A DNA stretch of 64,000 bases from Octopus bimaculoides (lineage: Eukaryota). The notes under the pieces were generated by a model that did not search any database, had not been told where the DNA came from, and saw nothing but the letters and a program-made list of their open reading frames with translations. The stretch spans positions 22,469,641 through 22,533,640 of the forward strand of contig NC_068994.1 in NCBI RefSeq assembly GCF_001194135.2. The letters run 5' to 3'. Position numbers and translations under genes: made by a program. Shown here one piece after another: positions 24,212-42,913 of the stretch. Numbering within the stretch: position 1 is the first letter of the stretch; every line of letters begins with the position of its first letter.

Positions 24212-24272
24212 ATGTTCAGGATTGGTGTTGTTCTCACATTGTTGGTCATTTTGGGGTTAACAAATGGAAGAG
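24212..24272 (+). CDS. Gene A exon 1: signal peptide MFRIGVVLTLLVILGLTNG/R
   Basis: accATG context, basic n-region, 12-residue hydrophobic core, T-N-G cleavage site, phase-1 donor AG|GTAGGA. Confidence 0.75.
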
Positions 24273-25439
24273 GTAGGATATTTTCATATTTGATTTTGAA
24301 GAAAGCCAAATCATCATTTTTATATATTATTAAAAATATTATTTATTCAAATTTCAGATCCAATTATTTTTTCACTTTACATTCACTTCTTTTGTCTGAA
24401 GCAATTTTATGCCCTTTAATAATTATACCTTTACTGAATATAAAGGTAAATTCTTTCATGTAAGTCAATCCTTATTCTTTCAAAACAGAGAATTTGAATA
24501 ATCTTTTTGATACCAATATCCCTGAAATTGTCTCTGAATCTATGATCACACCTTGTTAAAAAGTGTTTGCATTTAAATTAAACTTTCCATCATAATTTTA
24601 ATTAACCTCTTTTCTTTTTACCATAATTCTATTGAACTGAACTACTTTTGTTTCAAATAATTTTTGAAATAGTGAAGAATTAAAAAAACAATAGTTTTGT
24701 CATTATTAATCTGGTCTTTGAAACATAAGCTAAAATAAAATTTTGATTGAAAGTTTCAATTTAAATCACTTAAACACAAGAAGTTTGTATCATAGAACTT
24801 GGAACAGTCTCTTGTGTGTTTGTAACAAACAAGTTAAATATCTTTTGAGTTACATTACAAACAGCAGCTAAATAATGAAAAAAGTTATTTGTTTAAATCT
24901 TTACAAACTATTGATATTGAAACATATAGGTGCATTTCAAAGTTATATTGTAACGATTCAGAAATTAGTATCTGAGAATAAATTTATATATTAGTGACTG
25001 AAGTAAATGTCTAGTTATACTACTCCTTAATTGCTGACATAAAATTATTCAAATTTTACTTCAGTTTTCTGATACAGAACTTCATTAAATCAATGTCTTC
25101 ATTTTCATTTTACATATTGGTTTTCATACCTCATATGATATAAAAGTAATGAAAAGATTGATTTGGAAAAGTATTTTGCCATTTTTTTTAGCTAGAAAAC
25201 TCTTTCTCCCAGCTTTCATTATTCATATTATCTTGATTTAATGGCAGTAATTTCCTAAAGAAATGTCTATGATCTGGTTTTGACTTCCAGCAGAAAGAAA
25301 TCTATTTCTCTTGGATCATATGAGAAATGCATGTTCACATATGTTATGCCTAATTCATTTTATGTTAAGGTTTCATGCCTATAAATCATCATTCATTTTT
25401 ATCTTCTCCTGTCATACAGGAAATAAATTTCCTCAAGTG

Positions 25440-26510
25440 TCTAGGGGGAATCCTTGGTAGTAGTAGATAGTTTTCATTACCTACGAGACCAAATTAGCAA
25501 TGGCGGAGGTTACTCTGAAAGCATAGTTGCTAGAATAAGAACCAGTTAGGCAAAGTTCAGAGAGTTATAACTTTTGTTGGTAACAAAGGGCTTTTCCCTC
25601 AGAGTGAAAAGCAAACTGTATGATGCTGTGTACTGACATGGCAGTGAAACATGGGCTGTAACTGCAGAAGACATGTGAAAGCTTGAAAGAAAAATGAAGT
25701 CAGAATACACTGCTGGATGTGCAATGTCAGTACATGTACAACAAAGTTTAAATGTTTTGAGAGAAAAATTGGGTGTAAGTGGCATCAGATATAGTGTGCA
25801 AGAGAGAAGATGGCACTGGTATGGTCATATGATGCATATGGATGAGGACAGCTGCATAAAGAAGTGCTGATCTCTAAATTTGGAGGGAACATGAGGAAGA
25901 GGAAGACCCAAGAAAATGTGGGATGGAGTGGTGAGAAATGATCTTTGGATGTTGAACCTTACAGAGGAAATGACAAAGGTCTGAGACAACTAGCAATATG
26001 CTATGCAGAAAACACAAAGTACAATCCATGGCCTCCTCCTGCCTCCACAATGCACCCATGCTCACCACCGCTGTTTCCTGCCTCCCCTCCATTCTTCCTC
26101 ACATAAACACCTACCTGTACAAAATATGCCTCTGTTACCCTTTCCCTTCCCCCCACCTCTAGCTCCTACTCTCCTTTCAAAATCTTGGGAACCCACCTTC
26201 TTAAATCCCTGGTCCTCTTCACTATGATCTTGAAGTACAGTCTCTACCCACTCTCTGTCACATCTTCACCATCTTTCTTTCCTCTCTCTCCCTCTCTCTC
26301 TCTATTTGAAGTAGCCATATCTTTCTTCAAATGCAAAACACCTTTTCTTTCCCCCCATACCACTCCCCATCAGTTGAGGGGTCTTGTCTTGCAAATTACT
26401 TGGTAACTTCACTGCTTCTGATGTCACATAAAAAGCACTCGGCCCACTCTGCTGGGTGGTTGGTGTTAGGAAGGGCATCCCGCCATAGAAACCACAGATG
26501 CCACTGTCAC
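25440..26510 (+). mobile_element. 5'-truncated RTE LINE fragment
   Basis: RT C-terminal motifs (catggcagtgaaacatgg, ggaagaggaagacccaagaaa), pyrimidine-rich UTR, aggaagggcatcc tail. Confidence 0.8.
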
Positions 26511-27062
26511 TGATGACGATGATAGCGATGCCTGTGACGTTGCCAATTCTGACACTACCAACAACAACGATGACAATGACAATGATGCTGCCACCACTGA
26601 TGACAATGTCAATAATAACAACAATAATGACAACAATGACAATGACAACGATGATGAAGACAACGATGATGAAGACAACGATGATGAAGACAACGATGAT
26701 GAAGACAACGATGATGAAGACAACGATGACGAAGACAACGATGATGAAGACAACGATGACGAAGACAACGATGATGAAGACAACGATGATGAAGACAACG
26801 ATGATGAAGACAACGATGATGAAGACAACGATGATGAAGACAACGATGATGAAGACAACGATGATGAAGACAACGATGATGAAGACAACGATGATGAAGA
26901 CAACGATGATGAAGACAACGATGATGAAGACAACGATGATGAAGACAACGGTGATGAAGACAACGATGATGAAGACAACGGTGATGAAGACAACGGTGAT
27001 GAAGACAACGATGATGAAGACAACGATGACGAAGACAACGATGGCAATGACGATGATGGTGA
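26500..27062. repeat. GAT/GAC/AAC-rich tract containing ~26 copies of the 15-mer gacaacgatgatgaa
   Basis: Near-perfect 15-bp period from 26644 to ~27040, with occasional gat>gac or gat>ggt changes. Confidence 0.95.
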
Positions 27063-27349
27063 TACTCTGTCACCTAACAATCTTGATTTTCATGCAGTAT
27101 ATTTATAACAATTTTTTTTGTTTCTTTTCTTATCAATCTTTCTCATTATGATATCATTGCTTCTCAAACTATCTGATGTGGCATACTGGCAGCTTTTTTT
27201 TTCCAGTATGCCAGGGCCCAGTAATATTTCTTAGTAATATTAATTCATACCGGAAGCAATATATATATAATGAATATAATAAAAGTTGGCAATTTTTTTT
27301 ATCTTATATTTATTTTGTAAACGAATAATACAACATTACATAAGCATTT

Positions 27350-27438
27350 TATAATGTTTCTGGAAACTTGCCACATACCGGTAGCTGATGGCTTGCAGAC
27401 CGGCACCGATCTGTGGACCGCCACTTTGAGTAGCACTG
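27350..27438 (-). mobile_element. hAT/Charlie-type element end
   Basis: Minus strand begins cagtgctactcaaagtggcggtccacagatcggtgccggtc. Confidence 0.6.
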
Positions 27439-27444
27439 ATCTAT

Positions 27445-27829
27445 GTTGTTGGCACTCCGTCGCTTACGACGTCGAGGGTTCCAGTTGATCCGATCAACGG
27501 AACAGCCTGCTCGTGAAATTAACGTGCAAGTGGCTGAGCACTTCACAAACACGTGTACCCTTAACGTCGTTCTCGGGGATATTCAGCGTGACACAGCGTG
27601 ACAAGGCTGAGCCTTTGAATTACAGGCACAACAGAAACAGGAAGTAAGAGTGAGAGAAAGTTGTGGTGAAAGAGTACAGCAGGGTTCGCCACCATCCCCT
27701 GCCGGAGCCTCGTGGAGCTTTTAGGTGTTTTCACTCAATAAACACTCACAACGCCCGGTCTGGGAATCGAAACCGCGATCCTATGACCGCGAATCCGCTG
27801 CCCTAACCACTAGGCCATTGCGCCTCCAC
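27445..27829 (-). mobile_element. Full-length tRNA-derived SINE family C, young copy
   Basis: Head gtggaggcgcaatggcctagtgg (box A) ... ggtttcgattccc (box B); near-identical to 57269-57655; TSD actgat(c/a)tat. Confidence 0.92.
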
Positions 27830-40880: not shown

Positions 40881-41349
40881 TGTAACATAGAAATCCTAAT
40901 GTATAATAGTTGAATACTTATCAGTTGGAAAGAGAGACAGGCTAATGATAGCACACATCCATCACTGACAGCAGAAAGCATCCTATCTGATTGCAGAATA
41001 AACTATAAGCATAAAGATATTGAAGAAAAAACTTAGAACAAAACAAAAAAGATGAAAAATATTTTGTGAGGGTCAGCTTACTAGTAGCACTGTGTGTGTG
41101 TGTGTGTGTACACACATACACACATACATATGCTCTTTAATTTCATTTGTTTAACTTCTATTTTTCTTGTGCTAGCATGTGTTGTATGGGGATGTATTTG
41201 AGATGGGATTTTATAGCTGGATGCACTTCCTAAGCAGTTTTTGAAGTAAGGGATTTTTTATTCCACAGATTTTCAAAAACACAGCACTCAGTTGCAAAAT
41301 CAAAAAGGAATGGCGACATCATTCATTGTTTTACTTCCATGTAAAAACC

Positions 41350-41593
41350 GCTGATGCTGATGCCATGTAAAAAAACACTAGTGACAGTGCCATGTAAAAA
41401 GCACACAGTACACTCTGTAAAGTGAATGGCCTTAGTAAGGGCATCCAGCTGTAGAAACTCTGCCAAATCAGGTTGGAGTCTAGTGCAGCCATCTGGTTCG
41501 CCAGTCCTCAGTCAAATCGTACAACCCATACCAGCATGGAACAAACTAATATACCTGCTTGTTGTTTATACATCTGTCTTCGTTTTTTTGTTT

Positions 41594-41631
<38 letters not shown>

Positions 41632-41970
41632 AAGGAGGGAAGTAAAAGAGAGACACACTCTCAAAGGATTCTACACTGTTTCCATCAATCAGTTTCACTC
41701 ACAAGATACCACACTTGAAACCATGTGGCTGCAAACCATCTTCTTAGTCTAAGTTGCCCAGCCTTTGCTTGTGTGTATATGTATGTATGTACATATAAAT
41801 GTATGTATGGATATGGATATATGTATGCCTGTGTGTATGTGTGACGGGCTTCTTTCAGCTTCTGTCTACCAAATCCACTCACAAGTCTTTGGTTGACATG
41901 GGTCTATAGTAGAAGACACTTGTCCAAGATGCCATGACATAGTGCAAGCTTCTTAACTACAAACCCTGCC
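41350..41970. mobile_element. RTE tail (41350-41545, +) followed by two reverse SINE family A fragments (41650-41970)
   Basis: aagggcatccagctgtagaaac tail; gggcttctttcag...ccaaatccactcacaag body. Confidence 0.7.
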
Positions 41971-41985
41971 TACATATACATATGT

Positions 41986-42066
<81 letters not shown>

Positions 42067-42771
42067 GTTTTATCCAAGAATAAGGGTCATGTTTCCTTTT
42101 TCAGATAGGCAATAGTAAAGAAACTGTTCAGTGTTAGTGAGAATTAGTCATTCAAAGAGATAACCTGATGTAAGCCAGAGAAAAATTGAATGAAGGAAGC
42201 AGCAGATAAAATGGCAATTGAATATTATACTGAATGAAAATGCTAAATATATGATGCAAGCTGAAACGAATAGAAGAAATGAAGTAAGATGCATGAACAA
42301 AGTCTAAATGTCAGGTCTAGCTGGCTCTGAGAAATATAGAAATGGCTTGAAAAGTGTTCTGCATCCAAAAGAAGTGGGCCAAGAGAAAAGTCATCAGAGA
42401 AAGTATAGCAATGATAATTTGATAATTTATCCTTGGTGACTATGGGAAGAATTTAAGTAAATTTATTGAACCAAAAGAATGAAAATAGCCCATGTTCAGT
42501 GAAATGAACAACTATAAAAATCACTACAGAGATGGTAAGTAAAGAAATTAAAGATCCATGAATGGAACAAAACTTTCAGAGATTCTCTCCCTTTCTTTCT
42601 CTCTCTCCAGCCTTCCTTTCCCTCCTCATTTTCACTGTTTCAATTGCTAACATTTTTTTACCCTGTCTTATATTCAGTTTATAATTACAAATGTACTTTC
42701 AACTATTTTCTTTCAAAGTACATTTGTAAATATATAGATAGAAAGAATACTTGGTTTATGATATTTTTCAG

Positions 42772-42913
42772 AATTCCGTGTGAGAAGGAGAAAAAATAAA
42801 CCTGGGGTTGTCGTCCTTCGGATTCGCAATGGCAATAGGAATAAGGTGCCCCGTCGCCGACAATGTCCCAAGCACCCCACATCTCCTGCGCCACTTACCT
42901 GACCTGAGAGCAG
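42772..42913 (+). CDS. Gene A candidate terminal coding exon (E)FRVRRRKNKPGVVVLRIRNGNRNKVPRRRQCPKHPTSPAPLT*, stop at 42900-42902
   Basis: gatatttttcag| acceptor. Only phase 1 stays open on the plus strand. Strong donor CAG|GTAAGA lies 11 nt after the stop. GC/CpG-rich relative to the flanks. Confidence 0.5.

Follow-up and report, generated by a model that had tools for sequence, protein, structure and literature searches.

Does the stretch of Octopus bimaculoides DNA analyzed here (the window: 64,000 nucleotides of contig NC_068994.1, assembly GCF_001194135.2, positions 22,469,641 to 22,533,640 of the forward strand) carry a multiexon gene for a small secreted prepropeptide, and if so, where does that gene end and which peptides would it release? 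An earlier note, made from the sequence alone, had joined five exons with GT-AG ends in one phase into a product of 99 amino acids (aa) with a signal peptide and an R-X-K-R site and had described the gene as hidden. The locus is a real, spliced, six-exon octopus gene that encodes a 75-residue secreted precursor, which probably gives rise to two peptides of 27 residues each. It was not hidden: the five-exon product is identical (100% identity over 100% of its length) to the uncharacterized 99-aa UniProt entry A0A0L8I598_OCTBM, which has the same five-exon model, and an orthologue from Octopus vulgaris is deposited as CAI9733000.1. The gene model is thus already public but uncharacterized, and its last O. 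bimaculoides exon is very probably wrong.

Exon structure of the transcript

Logan RNA contigs were mapped to microsatellite-free substretches of the window, chosen from the TRF table. Three of the runs (X26, X27, and X30) are from O. bimaculoides (organism A), and X25 comes from organism C, a sister species. All three O. bimaculoides runs yielded one and the same short transcript contig, with lengths of 292 nucleotides (nt) in X26, 320 nt in X27, and 452 nt in X30, and its aligned blocks are listed in Table 1 together with the exons that they define. In all four contigs, the block aligned to exon 3 stops precisely at 30184, the end of this exon. The letters left unaligned 5' of exon 3 in X26, X27, and X30, namely, TTAACAAATGGAAGAG joined to TTCTAAGACAACAA (GCAG), correspond to the last part of exon 1 followed by exon 2, and those left unaligned 3' of exon 3 in all four contigs, CTAGTGAGAAGAAATTCAAGTTTG joined to TTAAGC, correspond to exon 4 plus the start of the exon at 53279. 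The predicted junctions 24272>29017>30119>33215 are therefore present in the RNA contigs of X26, X27, and X30; exons 1 to 4 are confirmed letter for letter by the three O. bimaculoides runs, and exons 3 and 4 are confirmed also by X25. With the RNA observed, a chance-based test of the splice sites of exons 1 to 4 was superfluous.

Downstream of exon 4, the transcripts depart from the 99-aa model. Exon 4 is joined straight to 53279-53333 in four of four RNA contigs, representing two species, and not to the last exon proposed at 42772-42902. The next joint, 53333>53907, has GT..AG ends and is present in the X30 and X25 contigs, and the X30 contig carries 22 A's after position 54073, 16 nt past an AATAAA signal. 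The X25 contig starts within intron 2 at 30060 and runs unspliced into exon 3 but from there on is spliced in the same way, to exon 4, then 53279, then 53907; exon 4 of organism C has a synonymous AAG>AAA change. RNA runs of four organisms (A, B, H, and I) contained words from the 3' untranslated region (UTR). A tblastn search with the tail of the O. vulgaris protein placed the orthologous segment at 53278-53334, with a good acceptor upstream. These observations establish the exon-intron structure, the poly(A) site, and expression in several related species.

The gene spans ~29.9 kb and yields an mRNA of 427 nt with a coding sequence (CDS) of 228 nt. Its five introns are 4744, 1084, 3030, 20040, and 573 nt long, the first four all being in phase 1. 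The RNA-supported product of 75 aa consists of the signal peptide MFRIGVVLTLLVILGLTNG, a first unit RVLRQQAVQLQQSEMDFNFTASNPLRL, the dibasic pair KR, and a second unit ASEKKFKFVKLQQQEIPVYFNFDIPPE, ending in VKLQQQEIPVYFNFDIPPE; this product was not found in the protein collections searched. The word depth of the transcript contigs is only 4 to 7, and two 2026 RNA runs, in samples of ~6%, had no reads over exons 5 and 6 (53200-54150), which together indicate that expression is low or restricted.

Table 1. Features of the locus and of the surrounding window, with the RNA contig blocks that define the exons. Some of the long open reading frames (ORFs) are repeat derived.
Feature	Window position	Strand	Details
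TATA-like box TATATATAA	24144-24152	+	~24-32 nt 5' of the most 5' RNA contig end; conserved in O. vulgaris; putative promoter element
Exon 1	24176-24272	+	5' UTR 24176-24211 and CDS 24212-24272 (61 nt); encodes signal peptide MFRIGVVLTLLVILGLTNG and R20; followed by a phase-1 intron
Exon 2	29017-29034	+	18-nt micro-exon (VLRQQA), phase 1-1; AG and GT conserved in O. vulgaris
Exon 3	30119-30184	+	66 nt (VQLQQSEMDFNFTASNPLRLKR), phase 1-1; 3' end exactly at the R-L-K-R convertase site
Exon 4	33215-33238	+	24-nt micro-exon (ASEKKFKF), phase 1-1
Last exon of the 99-aa model	42772-42902	+	131 nt; in-phase ORF behind an AG acceptor, stop TGA 42900-42902; outside the observed transcripts
Exon 5	53279-53333	+	55 nt (VKLQQQEIPVYFNFDIPP + GA); in O. 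vulgaris, its orthologue forms the protein's tail
Exon 6	53907-54073	+	Completes GAA (Glu75); stop TGA 53908-53910; 3' UTR; AATAAA 54052-54057; poly(A) site 54073
Contig positions 1-76	24197-24272		X26, X27, X30; 0 mismatches; X30 reaches back to 24176
Contig positions 91-160	30115-30184		RNA contig mapping
Contig positions 184-239	53278-53333		0 mismatches in X26 and X30
Contig positions 240 onward	53907-...		As far as 54073 in X30
Long ORF	1911-2194	-	
Long ORF	20440-21114	+	
Long ORF	33732-34175	-	
Long ORF	35694-36038	-	
Long ORF	45846-46457	+	
Long ORF	57763-58146	+	

The exon proposed at 42772-42902

The earlier note had presented its five GT-AG exons as a single in-phase gene but had marked the last of them as less certain. 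All five are present in the sequence, and the first four are the ones confirmed by RNA; the fifth is in no transcript, so that the caution was justified. The end coordinate given for the gene, 42913, marks the base immediately 5' of the next GT (a donor at 42914) rather than the end of the CDS, which lies at the stop codon. The segment 42772-42902 has no cover in the RNA contigs of X26, X27, and X30 or in the sampled raw reads of X34. Residues 57 to 99 of A0A0L8I598 consequently have no counterpart in any transcript seen here.

The reading frame at 42772-42902 is open in O. vulgaris too, but of the nine changes between the two species, 8.5 are nonsynonymous and 0.5 is synonymous, which is the pattern of unconstrained sequence and gives no support for this segment as coding; as a constrained coding exon, it was rejected on this substitution pattern. 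Its identity to O. vulgaris (~93%) is not clearly higher than that of most of the aligned noncoding sequence (89 to 91%) and is lower than in the regions around exons 1 and 3, and a value this near the noncoding level is no sign of coding constraint.

The segment might still serve as an alternative terminal or cassette exon (42772-42902, or to 42913) that is spliced to exon 4 in a particular tissue or at a particular stage, producing the 99-aa isoform with a strongly cationic C-terminal peptide. It has a good polypyrimidine tract and AG acceptor in the right phase, an ORF that runs to a stop codon, and the GT donor at 42914; acceptor, ORF, and donor are all kept in O. vulgaris, the segment was selected by the 2015 annotation, and RNA contigs demonstrate presence, not absence. 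Against this stand the direct joining of exon 4 to 53279 in every contig, the lack of RNA cover in the three transcript-bearing runs as well as in X34, the nonuse of the segment in the O. vulgaris annotation, and its substitution pattern and identity. A rare isoform of this kind is quite unlikely.

The correction bears directly on function. The basic mature peptide of the 99-aa model, ASEKKFKFEFRVRRRKNK... (net charge, +15), is encoded by the exon that is absent from all transcripts examined, whereas the RNA-supported C-terminal peptide ASEKKFKFVKLQQQEIPVYFNFDIPPE has a net charge of 0. Because the +15 peptide came from an unsupported exon, the leaning of the earlier note toward an antimicrobial peptide or toxin loses its main basis.

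Precursor architecture, conservation, and relatives

The O. vulgaris protein (CAI9733000.1/A0AA36BEK5; a hypothetical protein of 77 aa) matches the first 56 residues of the 99-aa model and then continues as VRLQQQEIPVYFNFDIQTEDD, in agreement with the exons seen in RNA. It is the orthologue and shares the same six exons, GT-AG sites, reading frame, signal peptide, RLKR site, and two units, but it differs by 12 amino acid replacements and likewise has no functional annotation. Exon 5 differs at its 3' end by a 2-nt indel (window positions 53330-53333; positions 29789-29792 of the O. vulgaris locus, L001), which changes the C terminus from ...PPE before the stop codon in O. bimaculoides to ...QTEDD in O. 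vulgaris. A second indel between the species, of 21 nt, lies directly 3' of the stop codon in exon 6 (53912-53932). The two genomes are ~89 to 91% identical over the whole region, and since the introns reach the same level, conservation alone is uninformative. Within the CDS defined by RNA, the nonsynonymous rate (dN) is 0.088 and the synonymous rate (dS) is 0.179, giving an omega value of ~0.49 from 22 substitutions in one species pair, which suggests weak purifying selection on the 75-aa CDS over few sites.

It could be argued that such a transcript is a spliced and polyadenylated noncoding RNA, or a young "proto-gene," whose 75-codon ORF gives no functional product. Expression is low (contig word depth, 4 to 7), the CDS has diverged from O. 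vulgaris by ~10%, roughly as much as the surrounding introns, and a RefSeq protein was not found. However, O. vulgaris retains the ORF together with its signal peptide and RLKR site, the two in-phase micro-exons, and all 10 splice sites; dS exceeds dN; and a homologue detected at the protein level (P0003; see below) has the same unit architecture at ~41 to 43% identity. This explanation is very improbable.

The N terminus has the layout of a cleavable signal peptide, with an n-region (MFR), an h-region (IGVVLTLLVILGL), and then T-N-G with small residues at positions -3 and -1; its grand average of hydropathy is 1.83, and the layout is conserved in O. vulgaris. The basic site R45-L-K-R48, which stands between the two units, is also conserved in O. 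vulgaris. The earlier note is supported in describing a multiexon gene whose product is a small secreted prepropeptide with a signal peptide and a basic site of the R-X-K-R type. The AlphaFold model has no confident globular fold (predicted local distance difference test, 54; predicted template modeling score, 0.21), and this low-confidence model would fit a nonglobular precursor better than a folded domain.

Each 27-mer is encoded by one micro-exon plus one larger exon, and each contains a core of the form V-x-L-Q-Q...F-N-F. Since the exons are phase symmetrical (1-1) and introns 1 to 4 are all in phase 1, the units look like duplicated modules open to shuffling, an arrangement that fits growth of the gene by exon duplication. 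When the window and the O. vulgaris locus were screened by tblastn and with a motif expression for additional unit-like exons or paralogues, only the two known unit exons were returned. One weak match to the core of a P0003 unit, VKLTLRPFDFKF at 57157-57192 on the minus strand (E = 0.04; also present in O. vulgaris), was judged to be due to chance; a stop codon follows four codons on, and a multicopy repeat lies within ~130 nt.

The statement that the product belongs to no recognized family also held. No Pfam-A family reached threshold with the 75-, 77-, or 99-aa sequence, the best noise being an ITGAX-like match at 16 bits and DUF4307 at 12 bits. When 1.84 billion representative proteins were searched by phmmer with the O. 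vulgaris protein (P0002), the only matches were the two octopus models and one anonymous fragment, P0003 (E = 3.8e-4). P0003 (WP_200467343.1/MBK3505377.1) is annotated as "hypothetical protein, partial" in an assembly of Campylobacter fetus subsp. venerealis; it is a 101-aa open fragment that fills the 303-bp contig JAENPT010000074.1 (L002) of GCA_016612925.1 and very likely represents contaminating eukaryotic cDNA in a bacterial assembly. Its local alignment score of 71 to 80 compares with a mean of 25 ± 5 for shuffled sequences, and none of 2000 shuffles reached it.

The layout of P0003 is ...KKR, SVEQKDVVVQLEQTNIPMNFDFASERY, KRK, AETKDVVIKLQMEPFDFNFDDVTPMRL, KR, and then ALNAKKFML.... Both of its complete units have 27 residues, the same length as the octopus segments from signal peptide to KR and from KR to the stop codon. 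It further shares with the octopus gene the core V-x-L-x-x...F-[ND]-F, a P-[LM]-R-L-K-R-A junction (P-M-R-L-K-R-A-x-x-x-K-K-F in P0003), and the presence of basic sites between units, which in P0003 are M-R-L-K-R at one boundary and KKR and KRK at the others. It differs in having at least three units rather than two, in the acidic character of these units, in an identity of only 41 to 43%, and in the absence of introns from its contig. Unit length and basic boundaries are conserved while the interiors have diverged, as would be expected if a multicopy precursor is processed. A word-based search with P0003 found only P0003 itself, and no relatives turned up when metagenome contigs were scanned with P0003 and with the alignment or when genome contigs were scanned. 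Full-text searches of the papers available with diagnostic peptide strings gave no match, and the portions covered of the supplements to the molluscan prohormone catalogue PMC6425005 held unrelated matches only.

From this architecture and from established secretory-pathway biochemistry, a sequence of processing steps can be proposed. The signal MFR plus IGVVLTLLVILGL plus TNG would take the protein into the endoplasmic reticulum and would be removed after Gly19. A convertase of the furin/proprotein convertase (PC) type would then cut after R45-L-K-R48, and a carboxypeptidase would remove K47 and R48. The predicted products are two linear, cysteine-free, nonamidated 27-mers, RVLRQQAVQLQQSEMDFNFTASNPLRL and ASEKKFKFVKLQQQEIPVYFNFDIPPE, which may be released as extracellular signals of a neuropeptide, hormone, or pheromone-like kind.

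A different reading holds that the protein is a small secreted effector that acts intact, as a defense, antimicrobial, mucus, adhesive, or egg-coat component. A clear signal peptide, the absence of an amidation motif, and fast evolution (dN, 0.088; omega, ~0.5) combined with taxon restriction, which are common in immune and reproductive effectors, would all agree with such a role. Unlike cationic antimicrobial peptides, however, the parts that follow the signal peptide have net charges of +1 (unit 1) and 0 (unit 2), so that the units are neither strongly cationic nor cysteine stabilized; the protein has no cysteines and no confident fold, and the interval of 27 residues between basic sites, conserved in P0003, is hard to account for without processing. 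An effector that acts intact is therefore an unlikely alternative to a processed precursor.

Multicopy invertebrate neuropeptide precursors provide the closest parallel to the processed precursor preferred here. Molluscan pedal-peptide/orcokinin-type precursors are examples of multicopy precursors processed by furin/PC1/PC2. Like these precursors in general, the octopus gene combines a signal peptide, units parted by dibasic or R-X-K-R sites, linear peptides without cysteines, and modular exons. It differs from them in having no sequence similarity to described families, in its long 27-aa units, and in the absence of amidation; here, moreover, processing and bioactivity are predicted.

Several points weigh against a convertase-cut precursor. 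The signal peptide call is based on inspection and hydrophobicity, and cleavage at RLKR is deduced from the motif. Neither unit offers an amidation glycine, the ends being ...PLRL-KR in unit 1 and ...PPE-stop in unit 2; the peptides also lack cysteines and have no known receptor. The dN/dS value of 0.49 comes from only 22 substitutions, and constraint is weak; P0003 comes from a 303-bp contig in a bacterial assembly; and the two 2026 RNA runs gave zero reads on the last exons in the samples taken. With these points weighed, the best overall explanation, and one that we consider reasonably probable, is a six-exon gene of low or tissue-restricted expression that encodes a 75-residue prepropeptide restricted to octopods and a wider set of relatives, an orphan precursor cut by convertases.

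It is conceivable, though this is put forward tentatively, that the octopus gene and P0003 represent the founding members of a molluscan or cephalopod signaling-peptide family not described before. Such a family would be characterized by alternating 27-residue units, one ending in ...DFNF-x5-P-[LM]-R-L and the other containing ...I-P-x-x-F-[ND]-F, with one micro-exon and one main exon, in phase 1-1, coding for each unit; copy number would change by exon duplication or loss, and the 27-mers would be the bioactive ligands. As an uncharacterized precursor of a well-known type, the convertase-processed secretory peptide precursor, the gene has a modest chance of founding an undescribed peptide family.

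Surrounding sequence and significance of the gene

The window contains seven N runs (2745 N altogether), one of which (23762-24088) ends ~90 nt 5' of the transcription start beside a (GT)26 microsatellite, so that the promoter-proximal sequence is incomplete. Intron 1 contains, at 26629-27043, a minisatellite of 27.7 copies of the 15-nt unit GACAACGATGATGAA (96% matches), which is the source of long artifactual ORFs on both strands. A short interspersed repeat of ~150 to 180 nt lies just 3' of the poly(A) site at 54180-54355, with a further occurrence at ~11890-12090; over it, RNA contigs reach depths in the tens of thousands. The repeat is probably an abundant transcribed element resembling a short interspersed nuclear element and has several copies in the O. 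vulgaris locus. Among the six long ORFs of Table 1, one is a weakly matching helix-turn-helix (HTH) fragment of a mariner/Tc-type transposase (Tc3 HTH, below the Pfam cutoff), one contains a weak PHD-like zinc finger barely above the Pfam cutoff, and the remaining four had no Pfam match. The ORFs at 45846-46457 and 57763-58146 lie within sequence with matches at several points of the O. vulgaris locus. An Rfam scan of the window found nothing.

The results concern one small uncharacterized gene of familiar architecture and introduce no new mechanism. They correct a public gene model, in that A0A0L8I598 of O. bimaculoides most likely has the wrong last exon, and they flag the RefSeq "Campylobacter" protein WP_200467343.1 as probable eukaryotic contamination. 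The conserved 27-residue units define two synthetic peptides that are open to direct testing. Orphan secreted peptides such as these are candidates for the lineage-specific signaling that is thought to underlie cephalopod novelties.

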